Sequence record: MT133560.1 | Strand: one strand, 5' to 3' | Length of the DNA stretch: 64,000 nt | Part shown: one piece after another, positions 21,198-37,402 of the stretch | How positions within the stretch are numbered: the stretch's first letter is position 1 | How the letters are laid out: every line of letters begins with the position of its first letter | The notes under the pieces: generated by a model | Seen by the model: the letters and a program-made list of their open reading frames with translations, nothing else | Database searches by the model: none | Told to the model about the DNA's origin: nothing | Position numbers and translations under genes: made by a program

Positions 21198-21761
21198 ATG
21201 CTTAAGCTTCCAGCGAGTGATGAGCCATTTCGGGTACTAGCATTAGACCCTGGTTCACAAAACCTCGGCATAGCTATTCTGGAAGATAAGTTGGATGGAA
21301 GTAATAAGGTGGTACGTAATGCATTTACCTGCCACCTTAAAGATACAAATCCGGCATATGCTGCCATCTCCGAGGTTCATGGTAGTAGATTTACTAGAAT
21401 GCAGCAAATGAGTGATGTGGTACTAAATATACTACATACTGAAAAACCACATGCAGTTATTGTAGAGTCTAACTATCTTGGTAAGTTTGCCCAAAGCTTC
21501 GCTGTACTTGTAGAATGTGTGACCTATGTACATAGAGCATTATACGAGTATGATAGATTTATACCTTTATACATGATTGATCCTACTACAGTTAAAATCA
21601 ATGCGGGTATGAAAAAAGTAAAGGGTACTACTAAAGATGATGTTAAAGAAGCAATGCGTTCTCGTACTGACATCACATGGAACATCGATATAGATAGTCT
21701 AGATGACCACTCTATGGATGCTTGTGCGATAGCTTACTACTACCTTACTAGGATTGTTTAA
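21198..21761 (+). CDS. ruvC: RuvC-like Holliday junction resolvase
   Basis: VLALDPGSQNLGIA (catalytic D), VIVES (E), DHSMDACAIA (D-x-x-D): the RNase H-fold acidic tetrad of RuvC. Confidence 0.85.
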   Translation: MLKLPASDEPFRVLALDPGSQNLGIAILEDKLDGSNKVVRNAFTCHLKDTNPAYAAISEVHGSRFTRMQQMSDVVLNILHTEKPHAVIVESNYLGKFAQSFAVLVECVTYVHRALYEYDRFIPLYMIDPTTVKINAGMKKVKGTTKDDVKEAMRSRTDITWNIDIDSLDDHSMDACAIAYYYLTRIV

Positions 21762-21776
21762 CAATTCGAGGTAACA

Positions 21777-22283
21777 ATGTTCCTATTAGCAGGTATACGA
21801 AAAATAATTGGTAGCGTGCCATTGCATATATGGTTACTATTAGTTATTCTGATAGGTGCCTTAATTGGTATCATATATTACAAAAATAGTTATGAGACGG
21901 AACTTGTTCGCTCTACAGATTTAATTGGAAAAATTAAATCTTATGAAGCGGCAGAAAAGGTTAGGATTGAATCAGATCGTATCTCCGATAAAATTCAAGC
22001 TGAACTAATTACTAAAAAGAAAGAGATACAAAAAGAGCAGGCGCAATCACGCACTGAGGTGATTGATGAGTACATTAGTTTATCAGGTCGTGGATATACT
22101 CCACCTGTATGGCCTGAGGTTAAAGCTAAAACAACTAATGGGGAAAGCACCACTACTGAGATTAAACATGAAACTGACACAAAAAAAGATAACATTAATA
22201 AGTCTATTAATGCTATTGCTAAACGGATGTACGAGCACTACTGTGCCGCCTCCCGTGAAAATACCAGTTGCAATCCCAAGTAG
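21777..22283 (+). CDS. Putative inner-membrane spanin (Rz-like i-spanin)
   Basis: One N-terminal TM helix (IWLLLVILIGALIGIIYY), a long charged helical domain, two C-terminal Cys; overlaps a lipoprotein gene. Confidence 0.7.
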   Translation: MFLLAGIRKIIGSVPLHIWLLLVILIGALIGIIYYKNSYETELVRSTDLIGKIKSYEAAEKVRIESDRISDKIQAELITKKKEIQKEQAQSRTEVIDEYISLSGRGYTPPVWPEVKAKTTNGESTTTEIKHETDTKKDNINKSINAIAKRMYEHYCAASRENTSCNPK

Positions 22284-22530
22284 TTTACTTCTCCCTTGCG
22301 ATGTGGAAGCCCCACCTACAGCTAATGAGATCATCAATGCATTAGATAGATATAAAGCTGTTGGGGTTACTGATGAGAATGAAGCACGTTTCTTACTTAT
22401 GACCGAACATTGGCTTTTACAAACTGATGCACTTGGACTATGTAATATCCAAGTAGACAAATTGCGTGAATGGAACGAACGTCAACGTAATTTGGAGAAT
22501 AGTCATGACCCTAGAGGACGTTCTGATTGA
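22168..22530 (+). CDS. Putative outer-membrane spanin (Rz1-like lipoprotein)
   Basis: From ATG 22168: MKLTQKKITLISLLMLLLNG|C lipobox, Pro-rich linker TVPPPVKIPVAIPSSLLLPC, C-terminal helix; +1 frame overlap of 116 nt with the i-spanin. Confidence 0.75.
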   Translation: MKLTQKKITLISLLMLLLNGCTSTTVPPPVKIPVAIPSSLLLPCDVEAPPTANEIINALDRYKAVGVTDENEARFLLMTEHWLLQTDALGLCNIQVDKLREWNERQRNLENSHDPRGRSD

Positions 22531-22900
22531 GATCGATGGTAATCCTTTATCTTCTTCTAAAGACTATGGAAAGAAGATACGTACCTATTTGAATAGTGTA
22601 TTGGAAAAGGAACAACGTATAAATCTAAGTATAACTGGTGAGGAAGTACTTAGTCTAATTTATGCTATTACCGATTCAGATCTTCAATATAAAATTCTCA
22701 GCCGGGAAATTGCTGAAGTGAAGGCTAAAGATTCTTACCGTAATGCGGTATTGGTATTAGCTGGTGGCGTTACTCTTATTGGGGCATCAGTATCTACTAT
22801 GGTAGTTTTATCTGGTGCACCTATGTCAGAAGAAAGTGCCAATGTGTTAAAGACTATTGTGCAAGGTACCTTTGAATTAATAAAGATGCTTATGCAATAA
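22505..22900 (+). CDS. Membrane protein, holin candidate
   Basis: GGAGA RBS before ATG 22505; soluble N-terminus, hydrophobic AVLVLAGGVTLIGASVSTMVVLSG, amphipathic C-terminal helix. Confidence 0.5.
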   Translation: MTLEDVLIEIDGNPLSSSKDYGKKIRTYLNSVLEKEQRINLSITGEEVLSLIYAITDSDLQYKILSREIAEVKAKDSYRNAVLVLAGGVTLIGASVSTMVVLSGAPMSEESANVLKTIVQGTFELIKMLMQ

Positions 22901-22910
22901 AAACTATAAT

Positions 22911-22935
22911 AGCCTTCCTCTTCAAGAGGAAGGCT
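22911..22935 (+). terminator. Intrinsic terminator
   Basis: AGCCTTCCTCT-TCA-AGAGGAAGGCT followed by TTATA. Confidence 0.85.
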
Positions 22936-22982: not shown

Positions 22983-23516
22983 ATGCAGGATATCTTTCCG
23001 TATGACATGGCATCGAGGGACGCGCTAGTAAAACTTGCGCGGGATGATTTAAAAATAAACTTCAAACCAGAAACAGTTACATTTGAAGATATGTTTTTTA
23101 GTCCAACCACGATTGAGCCTGGGCGTACATTTATTGAAATGATCGACATTACTACTGACATTAAGTACATGTTAACTTACCGTCGGTTAGATTTTGCTGA
23201 TCCACGAGCTATTGGTGAAGGATCTATCCTTAAGATAGTTGGTACTTTAACACCTAAAGCAATTGCTGAAGAAATCAACCGTTCACGGGGTTGGAAGCTT
23301 GGACCAGATGATGTTTCATTTGATACAACACCAATCAATGCAACTACGGATGTTGTTCCATACACGATAGTAGCTATGTCGAGTAGTTATGCTTACTATG
23401 GCGAATGTAATATACTAATTCAACGTATTGATGATACATCAGATACTATCCGGCTATTAGAGAATGGCGCAGCACGTTATCTAGAAAATGGTCAAATCCG
23501 TTATCTAGAAAGTTAA
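22983..23516 (+). CDS. Virion structural protein (gp143 position)
   Basis: AGAGG RBS; LTYRRLDF motif; C-terminal R-x-L-E-N-G repeats. Confidence 0.7.
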   Translation: MQDIFPYDMASRDALVKLARDDLKINFKPETVTFEDMFFSPTTIEPGRTFIEMIDITTDIKYMLTYRRLDFADPRAIGEGSILKIVGTLTPKAIAEEINRSRGWKLGPDDVSFDTTPINATTDVVPYTIVAMSSSYAYYGECNILIQRIDDTSDTIRLLENGAARYLENGQIRYLES

Positions 23517-23538: not shown

Positions 23539-24360
<822 letters not shown>

Positions 24361-24443
24361 GATGTAGCAATAGAATGGAGTCTATGGTATCATGTGAAAC
24401 TTCCCCTCATGATAAACCACATCTTTTGCTAATGTAACTTTTT

Positions 24444-24463
24444 GAGAGTCCTTCGGGACTCTC
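24444..24463 (+). terminator. Intrinsic terminator with UUCG loop
   Basis: GAGAGTCC-TTCG-GGACTCTC followed by TTATGTT. Confidence 0.85.
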
Positions 24464-24565
24464 TTATGTTGTTGAAATATTACTCATTGGCAATAGTACA
24501 TTACTGTATGAGTCTTCTTCGAAAGACTAACATGTTAGTGTTTCTTATACAGCAAGGAAATAAAA

Positions 24566-26935
24566 ATGGCAAATGCTACAGACAAAGGCAAGATCAGTCA
24601 ACTGCCGGATCTAGCTACTCTTAATGATAGCGAGTATATTGAATTAATTCATACCGATGCAGCTGGTCAAGTCGATAACTATAAGTTTCTGCTGTCAAAA
24701 CTACAGACTGGGGCACCCGGTCTTAGTGCGTACGAGATTGCCGTTAAAAATGGTTTCCAGGGAACTGAAACCGAATGGCTTGATTCGCTTAAAGGTAAAT
24801 CTTCTTATCAAATCGCAGTCGATCTAGGCTTCGTTGGTACTGAAGAAGAGTTTATAGCATCCCTTAAAGGTGATGCTGGTAAGAGTGCATATGAAGTAGC
24901 TGTGGAAAATGGTTTCCAAGGTACTGAACAGGAATGGTTAACATCACTGCATGCAACCATGACTGCTGAACTACTCCAGACACTCTTAAATCAACAAGGC
25001 TATACAGTTAAAGATGTACTGCGTGTAACTGGTAAGAATGGTGGATTATCATCCAACGCTGCTTTCCATAACTTTGCTTTCCTGTTTGATAAGCGTCTAA
25101 ATCAAGACGACTTAACTGCTGGTGATAAAGTACCTCAGCGTATGATGGAACAAGGTCGTATGGAGGCAGAAGGTTATTCTTATCTAAAGAACGCCTCTGC
25201 ACCCACTACGCAAGGTGCATTACCCGAATTACCTGAGTCTGAAATTCGTATTTATGACAATGGTGAATTCCAGATTGGTAGTTTAACTGATTACATTGCA
25301 TTCAAGAATGACGGCAATATCCGTATTGTTGAAGGCGTTGATGAAACAATTGTTGATCTTAAGAACCTTCCTAAAAACGAAGGTATTAGTGGCGGTGTAT
25401 TCGTCAAAGATGTACAAGCAACTGATCCCAGTCAGAACGTAGGTAGTATTGTGCGTACCCCTGATGGACACAGCGTACAGTCATGCCTATCGACTACTAG
25501 TAATGTTCGGGTTATCGTTGATGCAATAACTGGACATTCTAGTTATGTACCTAGTGTTAAAATCAATAACGTAGATGCAGTTGTAACTCCTGGCGTTAAT
25601 CCACCTATGTGGATTGCTACCGCCGATATTGATCTTGGTGCACCTACTACTGAAGGTTATGCTGATATTGTTGTAGAACACGCCGATGGGGCTAAATTCA
25701 CTACTAAGGTATTAGCCGATACTCCCGCTAATATTACCAGTGCTGTATTTACTGGCGGTTATCCGTTAGGTCAAACAGAACTTAAAGAAGATGACCTTGT
25801 TGCAATTAAAGTTGTTACTGATGAAAATATAGTAGCATACGAAATTGCTGACTTTGGTGCACTGAAAGAAAGTAGTGGCACTGTTGCACCTACTAAAGAA
25901 CTAGAGGTTACTGGTCTTTACGTAGCTGATCGTGGTAATACTACTAAGGCATATGGTTTCCGTGTACGTGTTCAGAAATCAACTGGTTCATGGTCAGAAT
26001 GGTTTACTTCCAGTGATGCTGGTTCCGAAGATAAAATTAACACCATGCAGTTAAACGATCTTCGCCCAGTTGTTAATATTGGTCAAGTAACTTATCCGTC
26101 TGGTCAAAGTGCTATTAAAATAGGTGAAACTGCTACTGTTGCCAATACAGTATCTAATGCTGATAGTGTGGTTTATTCCTCACCAAATGATCAGCTCACT
26201 ATAACCAGTGCAAATGAAGCAGAAATTGCTAAGGTAGTTACTTATAAGTCAGGTACTTATAACGACAGCACTAATAACCTATTAATTACTGCTAAACGTG
26301 CAGCTAACGGTAGTATAGCTACTGCTACTACTGTTGTAGCTATTGCAAATGCGGCTCCTACTGCAACGGTTACCTATCCAGCAGCTCGCCTTCGCTCAGG
26401 TGGTAACTTTGGAACCCAAGTACAAAGTCATGTCATTACTTTAACCTCTACTCAGAAACTAAGTGCAGCTCCGGCCATGAATGCGCCTGGCGGTAAGTGG
26501 GCTACTGAGGATTGGAAATCTGATGCCACTGGTAAGGTATGGACACGTGCATTACTAGTACATGACGATGATCCTAAAGGAACCTACGATTTTAACAGTG
26601 TGGTTCTAAAAGGTTTAGCTGGTGTTGAAGCTAATAGTGTAAATGGTGGTACTTATGTACTAGGTGGATTTGTATTCCGCACTCTAAGTGTGGCTGCTTG
26701 GCCGAACCGTGAAACTGATATTGGTACTGAAGTAACCAATACTGGTAAACTACGTTGCAGTAACCTATCTAAAGGTTCTACTGGTAGCTTAAACTTCACT
26801 TATAAGGCGGATGATGCAAATCAAGTTGACACCTACACCATCAAGGATGGCAATAAGTGGTATAACTGTGACTCAGCAAACGCTGTGTCCAACACCACTG
26901 GACTGATGAAAATCGAACTTGAGGAAGTAGTATAA
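24566..26935 (+). CDS. Fibre-like structural protein (gp145 position) with three SAY-x-x-A-x-x-x-GF-x-G-x-x-x-EW repeats
   Basis: KISQLP N-terminus, three collagen-associated repeats, T/V/A-rich beta-sandwich-like C-terminal half. Confidence 0.75.
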   Translation: MANATDKGKISQLPDLATLNDSEYIELIHTDAAGQVDNYKFLLSKLQTGAPGLSAYEIAVKNGFQGTETEWLDSLKGKSSYQIAVDLGFVGTEEEFIASLKGDAGKSAYEVAVENGFQGTEQEWLTSLHATMTAELLQTLLNQQGYTVKDVLRVTGKNGGLSSNAAFHNFAFLFDKRLNQDDLTAGDKVPQRMMEQGRMEAEGYSYLKNASAPTTQGALPELPESEIRIYDNGEFQIGSLTDYIAFKNDGNIRIVEGVDETIVDLKNLPKNEGISGGVFVKDVQATDPSQNVGSIVRTPDGHSVQSCLSTTSNVRVIVDAITGHSSYVPSVKINNVDAVVTPGVNPPMWIATADIDLGAPTTEGYADIVVEHADGAKFTTKVLADTPANITSAVFTGGYPLGQTELKEDDLVAIKVVTDENIVAYEIADFGALKESSGTVAPTKELEVTGLYVADRGNTTKAYGFRVRVQKSTGSWSEWFTSSDAGSEDKINTMQLNDLRPVVNIGQVTYPSGQSAIKIGETATVANTVSNADSVVYSSPNDQLTITSANEAEIAKVVTYKSGTYNDSTNNLLITAKRAANGSIATATTVVAIANAAPTATVTYPAARLRSGGNFGTQVQSHVITLTSTQKLSAAPAMNAPGGKWATEDWKSDATGKVWTRALLVHDDDPKGTYDFNSVVLKGLAGVEANSVNGGTYVLGGFVFRTLSVAAWPNRETDIGTEVTNTGKLRCSNLSKGSTGSLNFTYKADDANQVDTYTIKDGNKWYNCDSANAVSNTTGLMKIELEEVV

Positions 26936-29900
26936 TGGCTTCTGCATTTGAAGATTATGTAAACGGGGAACTCCCCAAACGGGTATCATCAATTGATGAG
27001 CCCACTTCTGTAGTTAATGGACACATCCCGGTTTCTACCGGGGTGGGTCTTAATACTACTTTCGTTGATCCTGTTACTATACCTGGATTAAAGGGTGAAG
27101 ATGGTCAGCCGGGTAAAGATGGCGAACAAGGCCCTCCTGGCCCAGTTGGTCCGGCTATTAACATTATCGCTAATGTTGATCTAGCAACATTCGAACAAGA
27201 TATTAAACCATTAGATACGCATAATGTCGGTGATGCTTGGTTCGTTGAAGATCGGCTATGGGTGTGGGAATCACCGCTAGGTAATGAAGACCCCCCTGTA
27301 AAAGGTCGTTGGGTTGAAACAGGTTCACTTCGTGGTCCAGATGGTACTGGTCTAGTTATCCGTGGTCGTTGGCCTAATAACTTAGAATTACCTAAGACTG
27401 AAAGTAATAAACCTGGAGATGCTTATTCATGGAATAATCAACTCTGGGCGTGGATGCTTATCTCAGGTAATAATCCGCCAGAGAATCCAACTATTGATGA
27501 CTATGATTGGTTCCCAGTTACACCACAGGGTGAACCAGCAATGCCGTTTACCATTAAGGATTCACTACCATCACCAGCTGATTTACCTGATCCATCTGTA
27601 GCTAAAGAATCAGAAGCATACTTAGTTACTATGGAAGCTGGTAAACCAGAACATCTATTCATCTTTGTAAAAGGGGCATGGTCAGACCTAGGTACTTTCC
27701 AAGGCCCTGAGGGCCCACAAGGTAAACCAGGTAATACAGGTGATCCGGGTCCCGATGGTAAACAAGGTGAACCTGGTCCACAAGGTCGTAACTTAGAAGT
27801 AGTTAAAGCAGTTGAAACTGCTGATGATCTATTAACCACCACTGGTGTAGAACAATACCAAGGTGTTTCAGTACGTTCCACCAATACGGTTTATGTACTG
27901 ACTGGCCAAGATCCGACTGTTGATATCTCATGGACAGCCATGGGTTCATTCCGTGGCCCGCAGGGCCCTGAAGGTCCGCAAGGTGAAGATGGCGAACAAG
28001 GTCTACCTGGTGAACCAGGGGCACAAGGTAAATCGGCTTTCCAAGTAGCATTGGACAATGGCTTCACTGGTACTGAGGGTGAATGGTTAATCAGTCTACA
28101 TGGTAAGAACGTAGTTATTACTGGTGCTGTTGCCAATGAGGCAGCCCTGCCGGCAGATGCTCCTGATCAGGCAGCGTACTTCACACAAGACACATCTACC
28201 TTATTTGTTAAGATAGATGGTAATTGGGTAAATAGTGGTACACATCGAGGTCCTAAAGGTGAAGATGGCGCACCTGGTAAAGACGGTGATCAGGGACCAG
28301 AAGGACCCGAGGGACCAGAAGGCCCACAAGGTCCCGCTGGTGAACCTATCCAGATCATCGCAGCGATTGACACTCCTGAAGATACCCCACCAGAAGCACT
28401 TGCCGATAACCAATGGAAAGCATATACTGTTAAGTCCACGGGCGAAGTATTTGTTAACATGGACGGTAGTCGCTGGACTAGCATTGGTATTATGGCAGGT
28501 CCGCAAGGTAAACCGGGTGAAGGTTTAAACATTAAAGGTGTTTTAACCGATGCTTCACAACTACCAAAGAAAGACACTGATCCTGACTTAGTAACTGGTG
28601 ATTCATACTGGGTTGAAACTAACGAAGGTACAATGCTCTATACTTACCAAGGTCAGGAAATTGATGGCTATATCGGCCCAATTAATCTAAATGGTGAGCA
28701 GGGTATCCAGGGTGTCGAAGGCCCACAAGGTCCTGAAGGTAAACAAGGTGGTGGTCTATTAATTATCTATGTTGGTGATGATGCTGGTAAACCAGTAGCA
28801 TCTGCTGATAACGTAGGTAAAGGTATTGCCATTCGCACCAATACTGAAGGACAAGTAGAAGTATTTGTAAGTATCGATACTGAAGGTACATTTACTTGGG
28901 AAAGCCTAGGTGTCTTAGCCATGGGTCCGCAGGGTCCTGAAGGTCCTGAGGGCAAACAAGGTGTTCCAGGTATCCCTGGTAAAACCGGTCAGAAAGGTGA
29001 ACGTGGATCCTCTTGGGTAATTCTACCTGAAGGTCAAACTGCACCCACTTCTATCGATGGTAATCGTGGTGACTGGTGTATCGACAAAACTGGTACCGTT
29101 TGGTATAAAGATGCTAACTGGGTTGTATTCTACAAATTAATGTCAGTTCCAGTTAGTGAAGTCGATCCAGAAGATGTCGATAAGAAAATGGTTCGGTACA
29201 AACTCGGTTGGACTGAACTACCTGTTGATGAGGTGGTAGATGCTGAAGTAGGTGTCTTCTATGGTCGCCGTAAAGCAACCGCTGACGGGGCTGTTGAATG
29301 GACTGCTATTGAATTACCAACACCTGCCATTGATGCTGTACCTAGTCCAGTTGTTAATGCACAATACGTTCGTAAAGGTATTGCAGGGGGTGAAACTGAA
29401 TGGGCTACCATTACATTCCCAGAAATTCCTTCAGATGTAGTACGCGATACTGCACAAGCTACTAAGCCTCAAGGTCGTGTAGCTGGTAACTGGGTTGATG
29501 TAGCACCTCTGCAAACCGATGATACTCTAATGGGTATGCAAAATGGTGAATGGGTAGCTGTACCAGCCGCAGTTATTGGCGAAGTACCTAGTGAAGGCGC
29601 TAATGGCACTAACTATGTACGTGAGAAAACAGCTAGTGGTTCTAAATGGACACCTGTAACTATTATAGTTGATCAAGCTGATGCTACTAGTGGACAACTA
29701 TTCCTACGTAACGCTGCGGCTAAATCATGGACTCTATTCCAAGGTCCGAATAATGATGTAACCGCTGATGGTGATTGGGTACGTAGCCGTACTGGTACTA
29801 ATATTACTTGGAAGAAGCTAGATAAATCATTCGATGTATATAGTCTGAAATCAAGTACATTCACTGGTACAGCTTTAACTCTAACACCTGCTAACCAGCA

Positions 29901-30144
29901 GTGCTATAGGGTTCAAACTACTGCTAACCAAACCATTACACTAGAGAATGGACCTGTTGATCGCATGATCACAGCTGTTCTTGTATTGCTTGGTAAGGTA
30001 GCTATGCCAACACTGTCTAGTGCAGTGCTACAGTGGAACAATGGTACTCCAGTAATAGTAGATGACCTAGGTGATACTAAAACAGTTCTCACCCTCTTAT
30101 GGGATGGTACTAACTGGATAGTTTCCAAAGGTGCTGTTATTTAA
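26935..30144 (+). CDS. Collagen-like fibre protein (gp146 position)
   Basis: Multiple (G-X-Y)n blocks separated by Trp-containing globular modules; TAATG coupling with the previous gene. Confidence 0.85.
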   Translation: MASAFEDYVNGELPKRVSSIDEPTSVVNGHIPVSTGVGLNTTFVDPVTIPGLKGEDGQPGKDGEQGPPGPVGPAINIIANVDLATFEQDIKPLDTHNVGDAWFVEDRLWVWESPLGNEDPPVKGRWVETGSLRGPDGTGLVIRGRWPNNLELPKTESNKPGDAYSWNNQLWAWMLISGNNPPENPTIDDYDWFPVTPQGEPAMPFTIKDSLPSPADLPDPSVAKESEAYLVTMEAGKPEHLFIFVKGAWSDLGTFQGPEGPQGKPGNTGDPGPDGKQGEPGPQGRNLEVVKAVETADDLLTTTGVEQYQGVSVRSTNTVYVLTGQDPTVDISWTAMGSFRGPQGPEGPQGEDGEQGLPGEPGAQGKSAFQVALDNGFTGTEGEWLISLHGKNVVITGAVANEAALPADAPDQAAYFTQDTSTLFVKIDGNWVNSGTHRGPKGEDGAPGKDGDQGPEGPEGPEGPQGPAGEPIQIIAAIDTPEDTPPEALADNQWKAYTVKSTGEVFVNMDGSRWTSIGIMAGPQGKPGEGLNIKGVLTDASQLPKKDTDPDLVTGDSYWVETNEGTMLYTYQGQEIDGYIGPINLNGEQGIQGVEGPQGPEGKQGGGLLIIYVGDDAGKPVASADNVGKGIAIRTNTEGQVEVFVSIDTEGTFTWESLGVLAMGPQGPEGPEGKQGVPGIPGKTGQKGERGSSWVILPEGQTAPTSIDGNRGDWCIDKTGTVWYKDANWVVFYKLMSVPVSEVDPEDVDKKMVRYKLGWTELPVDEVVDAEVGVFYGRRKATADGAVEWTAIELPTPAIDAVPSPVVNAQYVRKGIAGGETEWATITFPEIPSDVVRDTAQATKPQGRVAGNWVDVAPLQTDDTLMGMQNGEWVAVPAAVIGEVPSEGANGTNYVREKTASGSKWTPVTIIVDQADATSGQLFLRNAAAKSWTLFQGPNNDVTADGDWVRSRTGTNITWKKLDKSFDVYSLKSSTFTGTALTLTPANQQCYRVQTTANQTITLENGPVDRMITAVLVLLGKVAMPTLSSAVLQWNNGTPVIVDDLGDTKTVLTLLWDGTNWIVSKGAVI
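27085..29008 (+). repeat. Interrupted collagen G-X-Y coding repeats
   Basis: Examples: GPEGPQGKPGNTGDPGPDGKQGEPGPQG and GPKGEDGAPGKDGDQGPEGPEGPEGPQGPAGEP. Boundaries approximate. Confidence 0.9.
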
Positions 30145-30155
30145 AATGACATATT

Positions 30156-30175
30156 GCCCTCCCTTCGGGGAGGGC
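30156..30175 (+). terminator. Hairpin terminator (GCCCTCCC family, UUCG loop)
   Basis: GCCCTCCC-TTCG-GGGAGGGC followed by TTTATTTT. Confidence 0.9.
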
Positions 30176-30244
30176 TTTATTTTGTCTTTTAAGATTGATT
30201 CATTATTAACCATACCATCGTACCAGTTATATCTAAAAAAAAGC

Positions 30245-30271
30245 ATAGAAAGCCCTATTAGGGCTTTCTAT
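30245..30271 (-). terminator. Terminator of the leftward operon
   Basis: ATAGAAAGCCCT-ATT-AGGGCTTTCTAT 12-bp stem; A-run at about 30235-30242 gives a U tract on the minus strand. Confidence 0.85.
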
Positions 30272-30277
30272 TGGGTA

Positions 30278-30994
30278 TCATGGCTTAAACATGGAAAAGT
30301 ATTCAGCATCGATGAAATCAAAGTCGATATTAAGTTTATGCTTTAACTGGAAATCCATGATAATAAACTGTTTATCTTCAACAGCTAATTCACTTACATC
30401 TTTCTCAAATAGTTTTGGACCAATAATAGTAAAGTCAGGCATCAACACTTGTCCTAATTCAAGAACATGGGTTTTACACCATTCTCCAAAATTATACATA
30501 ATCGCCATTGAATAGATAGAGTTTAATCTAGAACAAGTAAGGTCTGTTAATGGAGTATTAATCAGGGTGATCTGAATATGATCACCAATGTACTTATGTA
30601 AGCAGTATAGTAATTCATCTTGAGCATCTGGTGTCAATTCATATGGCCAGATATTGACTTCAAGACATGTTTCAAAATTAGCATTAACTATACCATCTAA
30701 TCTATTCAAATCTGATTGGGCTATTAATTGAATAATAAATGGAATGATACCAGTGAATATAGAACTATTGATAGTGTCAGCAGTATTTTCACCACCACGT
30801 TTAGAATAAGCTTCGACAAATTGTTCATTAGTTACTAAACCATCTGTTAGTTTAGTCCAATCATCCATTTCCCTATGCCAGTAAATTTGACCATTGGTAA
30901 CAAGCTTATTAGCTGCATCTTTATTTAGTAACCTAATGGTTCCTAATCGTGTATCTAATAGTGAGTCAAGATCAATTAAGATTTTACGAAACAT
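30278..30994 (-). CDS. Hypothetical protein with HAD-like N-terminal motif (gp147 position)
   Basis: KILIDLDSLLDTR resembles HAD motif I (hhhDxD). Confidence 0.55.
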   Translation of the reverse strand: MFRKILIDLDSLLDTRLGTIRLLNKDAANKLVTNGQIYWHREMDDWTKLTDGLVTNEQFVEAYSKRGGENTADTINSSIFTGIIPFIIQLIAQSDLNRLDGIVNANFETCLEVNIWPYELTPDAQDELLYCLHKYIGDHIQITLINTPLTDLTCSRLNSIYSMAIMYNFGEWCKTHVLELGQVLMPDFTIIGPKLFEKDVSELAVEDKQFIIMDFQLKHKLNIDFDFIDAEYFSMFKP

Positions 30995-31490
30995 TATTAT
31001 TTACCGCCTTCTTTTTAGATGGCTTAGCTTGAACTGGGATAGATTCAACTAGATTAGTAATATAACGGATATTTAAACATTGGCAAATAATCCAAACTAA
31101 CCAATCATTTTGGTATAAAATGTCAGTTAATTCTTTTCGTGGAATTAATCGCGCTAACATTTCTTGGTCAACAATAGTTGAATTAGGTTGATAAGGATAA
31201 ATAGAATTAGCTAGTAATTCCACCACACCATCCCAATCATTAACAGCCATTTTAAATCGACTAACTAAACTTAAGATGGGTTGAAGACGATTACCTTTGT
31301 TACGGAATAAATTCCAGATATCCCTAATAACTGTTTTATCAGCAATGTGATACCAATGGGTATTAGTACTCCAGTTATTTAGTAAATCCAAAATATCCGC
31401 AATGATTTCAGCACTGTATCCATTTACTAACTCAGTATTAGATACAATTAAAGCTTCACACATATCTTCGTAAATCTGGCGATTATTCAT
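30984..31490 (-). CDS. Hypothetical protein (gp148 position)
   Basis: Tightly packed in the operon; 11-nt overlap with the downstream gene. Confidence 0.8.
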   Translation of the reverse strand: MNNRQIYEDMCEALIVSNTELVNGYSAEIIADILDLLNNWSTNTHWYHIADKTVIRDIWNLFRNKGNRLQPILSLVSRFKMAVNDWDGVVELLANSIYPYQPNSTIVDQEMLARLIPRKELTDILYQNDWLVWIICQCLNIRYITNLVESIPVQAKPSKKKAVNNNVS

Positions 31491-31492
31491 AG

Positions 31493-32167
31493 TTACACCA
31501 AGTTATTTTGTAACATCATGCCTTTTAGATAACATGCAAATGTTTTATTAGATTGCACAGTAGTATCATAAGTAGACATGATGGAATCAACAGAAGCACT
31601 ACCAGTTTCGATAATAGAGCGGTTCATTGCATTATATGCTTTCTGGTCACCACCACGTAGTTTCATGAATTCAATCATGGAATAACGGAGACCTTTTGAA
31701 GCGTTAACCTGAATCTCTGGTGCAGACATACGTGATCCTTTAGAATCACCAGTTACTTGCCCTGACCTCTGGTCAATCACATGACTAGAACCTGGAATAC
31801 TTTTCTTTTTCTCAAGCATTTGTACTTGACGACGAATTGGTATTAAACCAACTAAATGTTTATTAGCAGTTCGATATACCTGGCCAGTACCTGGATCAGT
31901 TAAAATGATGTGTTGGAATAAATTATGACCAATCGCTTTAGCAACTTTATAATTTTGCTTAATAGTTAATTTAGGCTTAGTGCATAAGTTAGGAGCATAT
32001 AATGCCAACATCTCTTCACCAGAATCTAACTTATTAATCCACTCCTCAAATTCCTCATCATTCATTCGTGCAAACATTTCTTTATAGATATCAACATTAC
32101 TACTACCAGGTAGAAACATGTCAATAATCCATAGGCATTCTTTTTCTACCAATTCTCGTTTAGTCAT
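31493..32167 (-). CDS. gp149: Virion RNA polymerase beta C-terminal fragment
   Basis: RRQVQMLEKK...DQRSGQVTGDSKGSRMSAPE...EFMKLRGGD aligns by eye with RpoB KLNHLVDDK...VTQQPLGG...GGQRFGEME...EMLTVKSDD. Confidence 0.88.
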   Translation of the reverse strand: MTKRELVEKECLWIIDMFLPGSSNVDIYKEMFARMNDEEFEEWINKLDSGEEMLALYAPNLCTKPKLTIKQNYKVAKAIGHNLFQHIILTDPGTGQVYRTANKHLVGLIPIRRQVQMLEKKKSIPGSSHVIDQRSGQVTGDSKGSRMSAPEIQVNASKGLRYSMIEFMKLRGGDQKAYNAMNRSIIETGSASVDSIMSTYDTTVQSNKTFACYLKGMMLQNNLV

Positions 32168-32199
32168 GGTAATTTCCTCTAAGGTTGTTTAACATACCA

Positions 32200-32520
32200 T
32201 TAGCTTGAGCGAGATACCCCTTGATAGACAGGTATTGAATTCTGGTCAGTACATGGTGGTAACCTATGCCTCTTAAGAATTGGTAATATATTGGCTAGAA
32301 AATTAGCATACCATACTTCAAAGGTGACTGAATCATCAATGGTGGTTCTAGCTGTCAATGTCTGACTAGGGTATTGAGCTAATAGTTGCTGAAAGCAAGC
32401 TGATAAAGTGGGTACGTCTGTACACACTGGTAATCGACGTAATAGATCTTCTGATAGTTCAACATCAAACATTCGTAGACGTTGACAAAGTGTTAAACGA
32501 TAATCTTCTGTAGTTTTCAT
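32200..32520 (-). CDS. Hypothetical protein (gp150 position)
   Basis: AAGGA-like RBS; in operon. Confidence 0.75.
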   Translation of the reverse strand: MKTTEDYRLTLCQRLRMFDVELSEDLLRRLPVCTDVPTLSACFQQLLAQYPSQTLTARTTIDDSVTFEVWYANFLANILPILKRHRLPPCTDQNSIPVYQGVSRSS

Positions 32521-32543
32521 TATAGTTCCTTAGGGTCTTTATT

Positions 32544-32894
32544 TTACTTTGATATCTCACCACAGTAAATGACCTCTGTTTTTGTTTCAAGCCATTCTAC
32601 TAATAAATGCCGGTGACAGAAATTACCAGCGCGACAATAACAACCTAATGCTACTTCCTCTAATTGGAAGAACCATTTAAAGAATTCTGGATTATCAATC
32701 AATGATTGCTCTAATATACTGAGATATGCTTCAGTGTATTCATCACTTGATATAATTCCTTTCTTATGTCCCATAACCATTAACCACGTAGGCGCGAGTT
32801 GATATGCACCTGATTTAACAGTTATGTCTAGCGGTTTTATTCCTTTCTCTATAACTAACTTATATTTAGCTATCTGATAAGTGTAAACATTCAT
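32544..32894 (-). CDS. DUF488/YeaO-like protein (gp151 position)
   Basis: LAPT...EY...Y...L and ALGCYC-x4-CHRHLL pattern. Confidence 0.65.
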   Translation of the reverse strand: MNVYTYQIAKYKLVIEKGIKPLDITVKSGAYQLAPTWLMVMGHKKGIISSDEYTEAYLSILEQSLIDNPEFFKWFFQLEEVALGCYCRAGNFCHRHLLVEWLETKTEVIYCGEISK

Positions 32895-32909
32895 ATATCA
32901 AACCTGACA

Positions 32910-32938
32910 TAACTAGGGATCTTATTGACCCCTAGTTA
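32910..32938 (-). terminator. Terminator downstream of uvsX
   Basis: TAACTAGGG...CCCTAGTTA stem; the minus strand continues TTATGTC. Confidence 0.7.
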
Positions 32939-32970
32939 TTTTAAAACTGGCGATAACATCTATACTAACA

Positions 32971-34410
32971 TTAAGCTTTTGCTTTAGCTAGTTCAAGAGG
33001 TACAATTTTAGCTTTTTCTTCGTCAGTCATCCAGTATGGTTTATATTCACTTTTACGCATGCGTAGTAGGTCATACGTTGATAGGAATTTTTTATCACTA
33101 AACTGTTCGTCTTCTTCGAACATCCAATAGCCACGAGTATTATTAAGAATGATATCCCAATCATAACCCATTACTTTAAGATCAGCATACAGTTCAGCTG
33201 GAGTTACTACATAATCTCCAAGATTCCAACGTTGGAATTGAATTAATTGTAGCATTTCAGATTGGATTTCAACAGCTCGTTGTAGAGCAGGGTTATCCAT
33301 CAATTTCTTACGAACAGTGGTTCGGCTTAGTTTGATATCAGGACATAGCTCAACGAAGTAGTTAATGTTATTACCACCAATCCCCCAATCATTTTCACGG
33401 CAATAATGGAATTCTGATAGTGATGGAAGAATACCTTCAGTTTGTGAAACAATGAGATGGAATGGTAGACCAGTAATTCCACCTTTACCACGTAAGTTAA
33501 TAACTTCTAGAATACGTAGATCTGTATCGCCTTCAATAGCAGTTGAATTGTCAATTGGATATAAAGGCATTTTTTCTTTATTGACTAACGGTTTATTAGA
33601 TTCAATAGAAAACACATTATTCGGCAGAGAGTAGAAACCACCTGATACCCCTTTAAGAACCGTATCCTTCTTCATATGCGATAGATTACGTTTATCAGTA
33701 GGGTACATCTCAATTTGAATGATATCTCCAACGTGTGCAGTGAGAATCATGTATGTACTGGTTTTAGCACAGATCTGCGGTAGCTGGTTAAATAACTGAT
33801 TCTTAGCTTTACCATTAGTCATTGCATCAGTGTTTACTTTAGAATCACCGATAGCATTTTTAGCATACATTTCAGACACAGCTGAGACAATGAACTTTGA
33901 GAAACTATCAATGAACCCGCCAGTTGGGTACAGTGCTTTCTTATTATTACCATTCACATCAAGAAATGGGGTAGTACGTAGATAATCTTTTTCAGCCTTT
34001 TCTTTTTCAGATAATGCATCGCGGAAGATTTTGAACCACTCATCCCCAGTATAACGAGATAAGTCAGTAAACATGTATTGCTCATCATTTTCCCAATCGA
34101 TAGCAGCTAGCTCAGGATAAGCTTGTGCTAAAGATGTAAATCGAGCACCTGGGTTTAATGTACCTTCTGTATCGTAAGTCATTGCATGTGCACCGGGGAA
34201 AGCACGGCGCATCATTGCCATAAGGTAGATACCTAATGCAGTTTTAAAATTATTAGGTCGTGAAGCAATACCAGTTAGTGATCCCATACCACCATTTAGA
34301 ATCATTTCACCATGCTTACCTTGTTCATACTTACCAGTTGAAATGTCCATAAGGCATCCGATGTTAAGAGCCGGTCGGAAAGCTGGACGTTCGAAATGTT
34401 TACCAAACAT
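32971..34410 (-). CDS. uvsX: UvsX/RecA-like recombinase (gp152)
   Basis: LNIGCLMDISTG...G start, variant P-loop GIASRPNNFKTA, YDTEG, Walker B GFIDS, YMILTAH...GG: RecA-fold order of motifs. Confidence 0.85.
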   Translation of the reverse strand: MFGKHFERPAFRPALNIGCLMDISTGKYEQGKHGEMILNGGMGSLTGIASRPNNFKTALGIYLMAMMRRAFPGAHAMTYDTEGTLNPGARFTSLAQAYPELAAIDWENDEQYMFTDLSRYTGDEWFKIFRDALSEKEKAEKDYLRTTPFLDVNGNNKKALYPTGGFIDSFSKFIVSAVSEMYAKNAIGDSKVNTDAMTNGKAKNQLFNQLPQICAKTSTYMILTAHVGDIIQIEMYPTDKRNLSHMKKDTVLKGVSGGFYSLPNNVFSIESNKPLVNKEKMPLYPIDNSTAIEGDTDLRILEVINLRGKGGITGLPFHLIVSQTEGILPSLSEFHYCRENDWGIGGNNINYFVELCPDIKLSRTTVRKKLMDNPALQRAVEIQSEMLQLIQFQRWNLGDYVVTPAELYADLKVMGYDWDIILNNTRGYWMFEEDEQFSDKKFLSTYDLLRMRKSEYKPYWMTDEEKAKIVPLELAKAKA

Positions 34411-34457
34411 GTTGACTCCATTTTTTAAGTTAAACAGTCAATTAATTGATTTGGAGA

Positions 34458-34468
34458 GTAATTTTATG
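34458..34468. promoter_or_regulatory. Candidate back-to-back promoters: AAAATTAC (minus, middle-type) and TATG (plus, late-type)
   Basis: GTAATTTTATG in the divergent uvsX/gp153 gap; resemblance to recalled phiKZ consensus only. Confidence 0.3.
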
Positions 34469-34507
34469 TCTACATATTCAACAATCCTTGCGCAAGGAAA
34501 TTAAGAC

Positions 34508-35422
34508 ATGTTTAACATCCATAAATACGCTAAAAGTATTTCACTAGAAAATGATTGTCAGGATCTAATTGAATCTGACAATATTGTTAATGATGATATT
34601 AGTTTAGTACAAGTTGATCCAAAACAACAGCTTGTAGATATTACTGAGACTATTTCTCAAGAAGCTAATTTCGCAACAAACGCTATTAACATTATCAATA
34701 AACGCGGTGCTAATTTTGCTATCGCTGCTCGTAATGCATTTACGTCGATGACTAACTGGAGTAATCAAATTATTCCTGAGTTCCATCCAGCGCAGATGCG
34801 CCATTTAGTTTCACACATTGATTATTTAGAAGTAGCAAATACAATCGTGCCACAACCAGTTGGTTTTAATGGTGAGATTCCAGACTATGTTGATTATCTA
34901 TTAACAGAAGCTAAGGAAATGGCCACTATTATTCCAGCGGTATTAGACCCGGTTAAAGCACAACTTGGATATTATCTACAACAGCGTGCTGATCGAATGG
35001 ATAAGCGTGGCTTTGCTAATTCATTTGCAATGGCATCGATCAATGATCTTGCTAAAGATGCTTCTTTCTATGACAGTGACAACCGGTCAAGTACAGCTGA
35101 GTTTGGTAAGCTTTACCCATCATTAAATTCATTTGTTGACGCAACAAAGAAAATGAACGATATTCGTAGCATTTTATCACGGGTTCGTCCAAATGATGTA
35201 AAACGTGCTTCAGAAGCGCTTAGTCAATTAATTGATAGCTTTATGGAGGATGTTAAGGATAGTAACTCTGACACCTCTCCAGAGCTGTTACAGACATTAA
35301 TTGAAGGGGTTACATGGGCAGCAGACCATGTTGAACGTTATTCAACACTCTTTACTAAGATTGTTGAGACTGCGAACACAATGAAAGCCACTGAAGATAT
35401 TCTTCGTGAAATCATTGGATAA
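34508..35422 (+). CDS. Head (virion) protein with N-terminal propeptide (gp153 position)
   Basis: SISLE|N matches the S-x-E prohead-protease motif; AAGGA RBS. Confidence 0.7.
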   Translation: MFNIHKYAKSISLENDCQDLIESDNIVNDDISLVQVDPKQQLVDITETISQEANFATNAINIINKRGANFAIAARNAFTSMTNWSNQIIPEFHPAQMRHLVSHIDYLEVANTIVPQPVGFNGEIPDYVDYLLTEAKEMATIIPAVLDPVKAQLGYYLQQRADRMDKRGFANSFAMASINDLAKDASFYDSDNRSSTAEFGKLYPSLNSFVDATKKMNDIRSILSRVRPNDVKRASEALSQLIDSFMEDVKDSNSDTSPELLQTLIEGVTWAADHVERYSTLFTKIVETANTMKATEDILREIIG

Positions 35423-35430
35423 CAGCATAA

Positions 35431-35453
35431 GCCCTCTCCCAAAAGGAGAGGGC
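35431..35453. terminator. Bidirectional hairpin terminator
   Basis: CATAA-GCCCTCTCC-CAAAA-GGAGAGGGC-ATTATG between convergent genes. Confidence 0.88.
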
Positions 35454-35468
35454 ATTATGTCGTACCAA

Positions 35469-35888
35469 TCAATTTGGAATACACTTCTCATGTAAACTTA
35501 ATTTAAAGAGAGTTTTCAAATCCTTTAAAAAAGTTGCATCATCAGCATATTTCATCCAACACGGAGTCTTACGAATAAGCCTCATGAAAAATTGATCAGT
35601 GGTTAGATCTGCTTTATCAATCTTATCGATTGCTATCACGCCTTTCCATACGTACGGCCCATAATGAATTGGGAGTCGTAAGGCAGCTTCATCGCGTACT
35701 AGTTTCATGTTAGAATTCAAATGAGAGATCTTTTCACACTCATTTGTCTTACACTGTACTATAACGGAGTACAGTGACGCCATGACGCACATCCGCTTTA
35801 GTTCGGGATCAGCATAGTCCCAGAGCTTAATCCAAATTGCCCTGAAACCATTCTTAACCGACTTTTTGAATCTGCTAATAAGGTTCAT
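35469..35888 (-). CDS. Hypothetical protein (gp154 position)
   Basis: Start moved to MNLISRF, 11 nt after the RNase H stop, avoiding overlap. Confidence 0.7.
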   Translation of the reverse strand: MNLISRFKKSVKNGFRAIWIKLWDYADPELKRMCVMASLYSVIVQCKTNECEKISHLNSNMKLVRDEAALRLPIHYGPYVWKGVIAIDKIDKADLTTDQFFMRLIRKTPCWMKYADDATFLKDLKTLFKLSLHEKCIPN

Positions 35889-35898
35889 GGAATACCCA

Positions 35899-37347
35899 CT
35901 ATTTTGGGAGAATAAATTGTGTATAGGGTGATTGATAGATAGCTGAACCATCATCCGTCACGAACACAATTGAATATGAATAAGAATATGGGCCTTCAGC
36001 TACTACAAGAATTTCCATTTTAACTTTATTAGCTCCAATACGAGCTAATTGGTTTCTACTTGGAATATCGATATTTAATACAAGCTTTAATTTTATCTTA
36101 CGATCTTTAAATGTGATCGGAACTTCTACAAAGCCTGTATTAGATGTAATCGTCTTAAGTAGTTGATAGCCAACTTTCTTACCCTTTGCGACTTCCTCGA
36201 AGAAGTGCTCGGTAATATCAATAATACCAACCGACTCTCCAAGTTTACCAGCCAAGTAATCTTCAAGACGACTGCGCATAACATTAAATGTAGCTACAGC
36301 ATCATTTGCCATACGTGGTGGATTAAGAGTCCGACTAATGAGTTCATCTGTTGGCGTCGACAAAACATTGATATCTTTCCATACGACTAGAGCAGGTAGC
36401 CCCATGGATTCAATTTTCTGTCGAATGGTTGCACGATATGCGTTTGCCAAATTGATGATACCCAGTTCTGGATTTTCAGTACCCAGTGCTTCTGTATGCA
36501 TATTAATTAGTAACTGGAGATACTCATCTGGTTCATTTGCCTTATATACACTGAAGGTTGCTTCAGAGATACGACGCCCTAAAATTAAATCAGCTTTAGC
36601 TAATTTATCTTTAGCAGTGTCTTTTGGTTTATGACCATAGTTATGCATACGACCTAAGTTATAGGTGTAATAGAACCCATCTGGTTCTTCTCCAGAGTTA
36701 ATGGCGAAGAGTAACCTACTTTCGAGGATAAGTGGATTAACAACTTGTTTTTTAAGTTTGTTAATTTCTTCGCCTTTAACCGAAACCATCACTGGCTTAT
36801 CATTATTCTGTCCCGAACCAAGCTTAGCATTAGCATCAGCTTTTTCATTACCAATGTCTCCGTTATGACCGCGGACCCATTGGATGCTTAATGGTTTATT
36901 AGTTTCTTCCCATTTAGCTTTTAGTTCGACCATCTGTTTCCATAGGTCCTGGTTTGCTACCGGTGTACCGTCTGATTTAATCCAATTGGACTTAATCCAT
37001 TTGGGTAAATATGCGGTCATACCTTTTCTAACGTATTCACTATCCATGAGCATCGTTAGTCTAGGTGCATCTGCTTCATGGGCTATTTTGAAAGCCTCAA
37101 TTGCAGCGGTTAGCTCACCTGTATTATTAGTAGGGTTATTAGTTACACTACCAAATGCATCAATATAATTTAAAACAGTGCATGTCTCATCTGCACCTAC
37201 ATCTAAGTATCCCTTAGCTGTTGGTTGCTGTTTGGTGGCTGCTTTAGATTTCATTGCAACATTTTCATAGGTATAACCATGAATACCCCAACCAGCTTTA
37301 CCCTGTCGGAATGATCCGTCAGTGTATAAAACCATACCGTCTGACAT
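35899..37347 (-). CDS. rnhA: RNase HI domain fused to a large C-terminal domain (gp155)
   Basis: LYTDGS, TNNTGEL, MDSEYV, NQDLW, WVRGHNG-x-x-GNEKADANA: the full D-E-D-D set of RNase HI. Confidence 0.92.
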   Translation of the reverse strand: MSDGMVLYTDGSFRQGKAGWGIHGYTYENVAMKSKAATKQQPTAKGYLDVGADETCTVLNYIDAFGSVTNNPTNNTGELTAAIEAFKIAHEADAPRLTMLMDSEYVRKGMTAYLPKWIKSNWIKSDGTPVANQDLWKQMVELKAKWEETNKPLSIQWVRGHNGDIGNEKADANAKLGSGQNNDKPVMVSVKGEEINKLKKQVVNPLILESRLLFAINSGEEPDGFYYTYNLGRMHNYGHKPKDTAKDKLAKADLILGRRISEATFSVYKANEPDEYLQLLINMHTEALGTENPELGIINLANAYRATIRQKIESMGLPALVVWKDINVLSTPTDELISRTLNPPRMANDAVATFNVMRSRLEDYLAGKLGESVGIIDITEHFFEEVAKGKKVGYQLLKTITSNTGFVEVPITFKDRKIKLKLVLNIDIPSRNQLARIGANKVKMEILVVAEGPYSYSYSIVFVTDDGSAIYQSPYTQFILPK

Positions 37348-37402
37348 TATTGTTTCCTCATGTGATCGATTACTAAACTAGATAATAATTCTAGCAAGTA
37401 AA

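Follow-up and report, generated by a model that had tools for sequence, protein, structure and literature searches.

Genes 141 and 141.1 of Pseudomonas phage phiKZ as an overlapped two-component spanin, and the start codon of its outer subunit

RESULTS

Overlapping reading frames at the locus

We have analyzed a 64,000-nt stretch of DNA from sequence record MT133560.1 (the window; position 1 is its first letter), focusing on two overlapping genes at positions 21777–22530. These are genes 141 and 141.1 of Pseudomonas phage phiKZ, and they almost certainly make an overlapped two-component spanin, with gene 141 coding for the inner-membrane subunit (i-spanin) and gene 141.1 for the outer-membrane lipoprotein subunit (o-spanin). 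The pair, including the 120-codon start of 141.1 used here, is already known: it was catalogued in 2018 and confirmed experimentally in 2025/26.

The original prediction, made from the letters of the window alone, described a type II membrane protein overlapped over 116 nt by an open reading frame (ORF) in the +1 frame. Both reading frames were confirmed, at 21777–22283 and 22168–22530 (Table 1). The shared segment is coding twice: its frame 0 yields the C-terminal helix and the Cys pair of the i-spanin, and its +1 frame yields the signal peptide, the lipobox and the Pro-rich linker of the o-spanin.

Positions 21700–22600 of the window have 100% identity over 901 nt with phiKZ (AF399011.1, NC_004629.1), and about 20 further Phikzvirus isolates are also 100% identical across this region. 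The window comes from phiKZ or a near-identical isolate. At the spanin locus, coordinates of the phiKZ record are obtained by adding 122,710 to those of the window. The offset from NC_004629.1 is 122,710 at gene 141 and 122,781 at gene 156, so the window's genome is 71 nt shorter than the reference somewhere in the interval ∼24400–37400; rather than matching NC_004629.1 letter for letter, it represents either a nearly identical isolate or another assembly.

Table 1. Features of the spanin locus, the adjoining lysis genes and a second membrane protein–lipoprotein gene pair (window coordinates; SD, Shine–Dalgarno; aa, amino acids)
Feature	Position	Strand	Description
i-spanin gene (phiKZ gene 141)	21777..22283	+	168 aa; identical to PHIKZ141, annotated 'Rz-like spanin'
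Predicted i-spanin transmembrane helix	21822..21881	+	approximately residues 16–35, N-in/C-out; hydropathy and model
Alternative start: GAGGTGAT, then ATG 22066	22056..22068	+	within conserved i-spanin motif EVIDE; 154-aa precursor
Weak SD core GAG before ATG 22168	22158..22160	+	7 nt upstream; anti-SD duplex −2.7 kcal/mol
o-spanin gene (phiKZ gene 141.1, corrected start)	22168..22530	+	120 aa, ATG 22168, +1 frame
Predicted lipoprotein signal peptide	22168..22230	+	lipobox L18-N19-G20-C21, codons 22219–22230
Dual-coding overlap	22168..22283	+	116 nt
i-spanin C-terminal Cys pair (Cys156, Cys165)	22242..22271	+	encoded within the overlap; invariant in eight lineages
PHIKZ141.1 as annotated (AF399011.1, NC_004629.1)	22243..22530	+	GTG start, 95 aa
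Gene 142	22505..22900	+	26-nt overlap with o-spanin 3′ end; 'virion structural protein' in databases
Gene 143	22983..23516	+	annotated coding sequence; reported lysis regulator (PMC12894885)
Gene 144	23578..24360	+	endolysin (lytic transglycosylase); ORF and annotation
Terminator-like hairpin ending the cassette	24444..24463	+	8-bp stem, 5 G-C pairs, T-rich tail
gp156.1	38115-37825	minus	96-aa ORF with hydrophobic segment
gp156	37816-37403	minus	137-aa ORF, signal-like N-terminus, lipobox LISGC; 8 nt downstream of gp156.1

The inner-membrane subunit

The product of gene 141 matches the profile of PHROG 7584, 'Rz-like spanin', with E = 8.6e-70, residues 10–168 aligning to positions 3–166 of 166; a Pfam scan of the same protein produced no match. 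Its sole strongly hydrophobic segment gives a best 19-residue Kyte–Doolittle window that begins at residue 16 and has a mean of 2.61. R8 and K9 lie N-terminal of this segment and the flank that follows it is net acidic; by the positive-inside rule, such a charge distribution fits a type II protein with N-in/C-out topology.

There are exactly two Cys residues in gp141, Cys156 and Cys165. A single-sequence AlphaFold2 (AF2) model has the membrane helix running on as one long helix over residues 16–103, where the predicted local distance difference test (pLDDT) score is as high as 95. Residues 112–132 are modelled with low confidence or as disordered (pLDDT below 50), and another helix, 133–158, reaches and includes Cys156. 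The modelled helix–linker–helix layout is the usual i-spanin plan, and a coiled coil in this protein was predicted by Manohar et al. in 2026 (PMC12894885).

The predicted outer-membrane lipoprotein subunit

Translated from ATG 22168, the o-spanin N-terminus up to the putative lipid-bearing Cys reads MKLTQKKITLISLLMLLLNG and is followed by C21. Three Lys residues make the n-region, and the h-region is ITLISLLMLLL (11-residue Kyte–Doolittle mean 2.93). The tetrapeptide LNGC fits the o-spanin lipobox pattern and has been cited as a deviant o-spanin lipobox (PMC6139136). A LipoP run, which the original prediction had proposed as a check, is published: LipoP called the 120-codon form of gp141.1 a lipoprotein with lipobox LNGCT (PMC12894885). 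Beyond the lipobox there are six Pro residues within residues 22–43, then LLLPC44 and, later, Cys92. The mature protein would have two Cys residues (C44 and C92) besides the acylatable Cys21. The lipoprotein features that had been read off the sequence (LLLNG before C21, the Pro-rich linker, LLLPC) are thus all in place, as are the two periplasmic Cys residues claimed for each subunit.

The 120-aa form matches Pfam family PF23793 (LysC, the P2-type Rz1-like o-spanin) with 40.1 bits and E = 3.6e-10, the curated gathering threshold for the whole-protein score being 27 bits. The match spans the lipobox, the Pro-rich region and the C-terminal stretch. A 155-aa form, extended at the N-terminus, scores 38.9 bits. 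Against PHROG 456, 'Rz-like spanin', the 120-aa protein gives an E-value of 1.6e-11. In a single-sequence AF2 model with a mean pLDDT of 52.7 the Pro-rich part is unstructured and helices are placed at 52–64, 70–85 and 88–112, which lends weak support to a helical C-terminal half. This agrees, if weakly, with the terminal helix that had been proposed for this subunit.

Conservation and selection in two frames

Searches with tblastn yielded diverged homologues in seven relatives (PhiPA3, Psa21, PA1C, Phabio, 201phi2-1, Noxifer and Viktualia), with 34–59% identity over the C-terminal part; with phiKZ these make the eight lineages referred to here. In all seven relatives a hydrophobic stretch is encoded in the +1 frame where the i-spanin gene comes to its 3′ end, together with a lipobox, which is LHGC in PhiPA3, LSGC in Psa21, LIGC in PA1C, LSAC in both Phabio and Viktualia, LAAC in 201phi2-1 and LTGC in Noxifer. 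The alignments of the eight lineages show no variation at C21, C44 and C92 of the o-spanin or at Y155, C156 and C165 of the i-spanin. The occurrence in seven relatives of a +1-frame ORF with a lipobox and invariant Cys residues is more than chance would produce.

Within the phiKZ species we compared four variants (SL2, OMKO1, 124.01 and KEN49). The three substitutions in the part coding for the o-spanin only are all synonymous, as are six of the seven in the part coding for the i-spanin only. This excess of synonymous changes in both single-frame parts indicates that both frames are under purifying selection.

The Noxifer locus (L009, 1015-1755) has a peculiarity of its own. Across its i-spanin gene, 143 codons of open +1 frame precede the lipobox Cys, far beyond the need of an o-spanin; the chance of such openness, obtained by synonymous resampling given the i-spanin protein, is 0.005.

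Published evidence on the pair

Kongari et al. (2018, PMC6139136) list phiKZ among phages with overlapped two-component spanins ('ovl'). In their supplementary tables the coordinates are 144486-144993 and 144877-145240, the overlap is 116 and the products have 168 and 120 aa; record positions 144487-144993 and 144878-145240 correspond to 21777-22283 and 22168-22530 of the window. Both phiKZ spanins were singletons in the BLAST clustering of that study (PMC6139136).

Manohar, Wan, Ganser, Sharp and Young (bioRxiv, November 2025, PMC12642527; Sci Rep, January 2026, PMC12894885) revised the annotation of 141.1 to a length of 120 codons. In their hands genes 141 and 141.1 together gave full complementation of a lambda Rzam Rz1am lysogen; constructs with one gene were tested alongside, and complementation required both genes. 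Lysis that is not complemented ends in spherical cells (PMC12894885). Complementation of Rz-/Rz1- lambda had been put forward in the original prediction as an experiment, one already in print and with a full effect. Its assignment of the pair to the Rz/Rz1-type architecture is borne out by the matches to PHROG 7584, LysC and PHROG 456, by conservation in eight lineages, by the lysis cassette context and by this complementation.

Several considerations weigh against the spanin assignment or parts of it. The complementation experiment used lambda in E. coli and not a phiKZ knockout. Direct evidence of lipidation, of a gp141–gp141.1 complex or of disulfides was found neither here nor in the available text of PMC12894885. 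With Asn at −2, the lipobox LNGC does not conform to a strict PROSITE-like rule and is acceptable only by the wider pattern for o-spanins; the single-sequence model of the o-spanin is of low confidence. Finally, the SD sequence of ATG 22168 is weak and that of ATG 22066 far better, so that ATG 22168 is a probable rather than a certain start.

The start annotated in database records

From a count of ORFs against gene numbers, it had been suspected that one gene at this locus is unannotated. The proposed comparison with the phiKZ GenBank record, made here at 100% identity, finds the extra ORF outside the whole-number gene series, as expected; still, it is annotated, under the decimal number PHIKZ141.1, with a start (GTG 22243) that comes too late. 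A wholly unannotated gene is thus rejected. As annotated, PHIKZ141.1 has no signal peptide and no lipobox Cys.

The coding sequence (CDS) chosen in near-identical genomes varies: 106 aa from ATG 22210 in KEN19 and KEN49, 95 aa in OMKO1 and 81 aa in SL2, with no 141.1 CDS in 124.01 and several other near-identical records. Such discordance among annotated starts points to gene-caller artefacts. The records of all seven relatives have the o-spanin CDS missing or truncated to 43–84 aa; with phiKZ, it is missing or N-terminally truncated in eight out of eight. None of the near-identical phiKZ-like records listed names 141.1 an o-spanin. That the outer subunit is easily missed, as the original prediction held, is a fair description of records that truncate or omit its CDS and, among those listed, never name it. 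The start at ATG 22210 was rejected; it stands just six residues ahead of the Cys, and at this place SL2 has Thr.

If the GTG 22243 annotation were correct, gene 141.1 would encode a soluble 95-aa protein and the lipobox upstream would be a chance product of i-spanin coding. This GTG is the CDS start in AF399011.1, NC_004629.1 and OMKO1, and the sequence upstream of it forms an anti-SD duplex of moderate energy (−4.0 kcal/mol). However, the hydrophobic stretch and the lipobox Cys upstream of GTG 22243 are kept in eight lineages even though the overlapping i-spanin sequence has diverged, and the lengths annotated for near-identical sequences disagree, as listed above. The 95-aa form scores 26.0 bits against LysC, just under the cut-off that the 120-aa form clears with 40.1, a difference that measures how far a wrong start conceals the identity of the protein. 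The complementation, moreover, was published with the 120-codon version (PMC12894885). We regard a soluble 95-aa product as exceedingly improbable, and the GTG 22243 start was rejected.

Two candidate starts upstream of the lipobox

The ORF list that accompanied the sequence starts the second gene at TTG 22063, and the original prediction set this start aside as 35 codons too early. The distance to ATG 22168 is indeed 35 codons, but the dismissal is less secure: one codon after the TTG comes ATG 22066, which has the strongest SD sequence of all candidate starts. GAGGTGAT lies 2 nt before this ATG and has its GAGG core 6 nt upstream. Pairing to a short anti-SD sequence yields a duplex of −6.9 kcal/mol, and pairing to an extended one yields −11.0 kcal/mol.

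The spanin would be the same if the o-spanin precursor were made from ATG 22066, either solely or in addition to the 120-aa form. At 154 aa, this precursor would include a signal peptide of 54 residues. ATG 22066 would then be ancestral and ATG 22168 a secondary start or one not in use, with no change in the mature lipoprotein. The difference in SD strength (−6.9 to −11.0 versus −2.7 kcal/mol) speaks for this possibility, and synonymous recodings of the i-spanin rarely retain an ATG with an equally strong SD sequence (1.7% of them in phiKZ and 3.6% in PhiPA3). On the other hand, the same test falls short of significance in five of the seven lineages (8–27%), the lineages are not independent, and the SD sequence and ATG 22066 are composed of conserved i-spanin codons (E-V-I-D) and may be a by-product of them. 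A 54-residue signal peptide is also unusually long for a lipoprotein.

Relatives with a short i-spanin linker bear on the question as well. In Phabio the o-spanin could plausibly start at the homologous ATG, which is already the chosen start in 201phi2-1 (that given by Kongari et al., PMC6139136), with a counterpart in Viktualia; in these three phages it lies 32–34 residues before the lipid Cys. Noxifer, however, has no ATG at the homologous place and has a strong SD sequence of its own 37 residues before the Cys.

The state of the +1 frame between the two starts can be read either way. From the homologous ATG to the lipobox it is open in phiKZ, PhiPA3, Psa21 and PA1C, and positions 22066–22167 have no stop in the four phiKZ-species variants. 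The chance of openness, estimated for phiKZ, PhiPA3 and Psa21 by synonymous resampling with the i-spanin protein fixed (PA1C has no value), is ∼0.25 each, evidence too weak for a choice of start. Between genera, the peptide that separates the two starts shows no conservation, and within the species three of the five substitutions located there are synonymous for the i-spanin and alter the +1 frame. Manohar et al., who favour the SD sequence of the 120-codon start, report it as the only start with a well-placed one (PMC12894885).

On balance, initiation at ATG 22066 seems to us unlikely, and we keep ATG 22168 as the start of the o-spanin gene. A broader form of the same idea is that phiKZ-like o-spanins have a conserved start and SD sequence written into the i-spanin motif EVIDE(Y), leading to a precursor with a long leader or to two precursors; this, too, is a possibility of low probability. 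So is its further part, by which an insertion in the i-spanin linker would have stretched the signal peptide to >50 residues in phiKZ, PhiPA3, Psa21 and PA1C, a scenario that we would not expect to hold.

The lysis cassette

The spanin pair is located directly upstream of the genes for the holin, the lysis regulator and the endolysin (Table 1). Gene 142 was described as a class III holin (PMC12894885); a Pfam scan of its product gave no match. Matches to sigma-70-like promoters around the cassette number nine, fewer than in shuffled sequence (14.1), and were disregarded.

Genes 142 and 143 are labelled 'virion structural protein' by both RefSeq and PHROGs. Their homologues in phage 201phi2-1, along with the i-spanin gp226 of that phage, have the same structural label, which goes back to mass spectrometry of virions. 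In 2026, Manohar et al. assigned gp142 as the holin and gp143 as the lysis regulator (PMC12894885). The structural label of 142 and 143 may reflect membrane carry-over in virion preparations. Manohar et al. also cite transposon sequencing (Tn-seq) data suggesting that gene 143 is the sole non-essential gene of the cassette (PMC12894885); no passage on the essentiality of phiKZ 141/141.1 was found in the available part of the Tn-seq preprint (10.64898/2025.12.19.695335).

The 82-nt gap between genes 142 and 143 contains an inverted repeat at 22911–22935 whose 11-bp arms pair perfectly around a 3-nt loop, AGCCTTCCTCT-TCA-AGAGGAAGGCT. This repeat could be a terminator, an attenuator or an RNA-processing hairpin that divides the cassette into a spanin–holin part and a regulator–endolysin part.

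A second membrane protein–lipoprotein gene pair

The minus-strand genes for gp156.1 and gp156 resemble a separated spanin in their arrangement (Table 1). They might encode the functional outer-membrane disruptor of phiKZ or a second one, in which case 141/141.1 would be redundant or have another role. Yet gp156.1 and gp156 match only PHROGs of unknown function and hit no Pfam family above threshold, spanin families included. The two genes adjoin the RNase H gene gp155, at a distance from the endolysin gene, and 141/141.1 alone complements the lambda spanin defect (PMC12894885). We find such a role for gp156.1/gp156 very unlikely and retain 141/141.1 as the phiKZ spanin.

DISCUSSION

Proposed mode of action

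The following sequence of events is inferred largely by analogy, which applies to lipidation, outer-membrane sorting, physical binding of the subunits, disulfides and the fusion step. In gp141, the inner-membrane helix near the N-terminus would extend into a long helix in the periplasm; a flexible linker would connect this to the C-terminal helix, which has two Cys residues. The gp141.1 precursor would be cleaved by signal peptidase II before Cys21, Cys21 being lipid-modified, and the mature protein (a Pro-rich extended linker and a probably helical C-terminal domain with two Cys residues) would reach the outer membrane by sorting and reside in its inner leaflet. The periplasmic domains of gp141 and gp141.1 may then join across the periplasm in disulfide-stabilised form, as those of lambda Rz/Rz1 and P2 LysB/LysC do. 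Peptidoglycan presumably restrains such complexes until the endolysin gp144 has been released by the holin gp142 and the wall has been broken down. Once freed, the spanin complexes would destroy the outer membrane, probably via its fusion with the inner membrane.

Significance

There is little new biology in the pair as such, which was published with the same coordinates. Our additions to the literature are the score of the 95-aa form under the LysC cut-off, the conservation of the Cys residues and the lipobox in eight lineages and the stronger SD sequence at ATG 22066. The practical value is one of annotation, as the GenBank and RefSeq start of PHIKZ141.1 still removes the signal peptide; correction of the records described here is relevant to work on phiKZ-like therapeutic phages. 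Scientific interest attaches only to the choice of the o-spanin start codon. Should ATG 22066 be used after all, two precursors could perhaps set the ratio of i-spanin to o-spanin, and the published 120-codon annotation would be incomplete.

Comparison with known spanins

The separated spanin of phage T4, PseT.3/PseT.2, has the same two-protein topology and the same lysis role as phiKZ 141/141.1 (PMC6139136). Unlike those of phiKZ, the T4 genes do not overlap, and no sequence relationship between the two pairs was found in this analysis.

P2 LysB/LysC is closer in gene architecture. In both phages the o-spanin gene starts inside the i-spanin gene and continues beyond the end of the latter. With 40.1 versus 27 bits the phiKZ o-spanin clears the LysC threshold, but it is longer than LysC, with a mature form of 100 aa and a predicted helical C-terminal domain. 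In contrast to P2, the phiKZ i-spanin has no Pfam match.

The lambda pair Rz/Rz1 likewise combines a type II inner-membrane protein of helix–linker–helix layout with a Pro-rich outer-membrane lipoprotein encoded in the +1 frame, with periplasmic Cys residues in each of the two subunits. Whereas lambda Rz1 lies wholly inside Rz, the phiKZ o-spanin gene runs 247 nt past the i-spanin stop codon, and both Cys residues of the phiKZ i-spanin are at the extreme C-terminus, which distinguishes it from its lambda counterpart. According to the available text of PMC12894885, gp141 shows no recognisable resemblance in sequence to an established i-spanin; the same work reports that 141/141.1 functionally replaces lambda Rz/Rz1.

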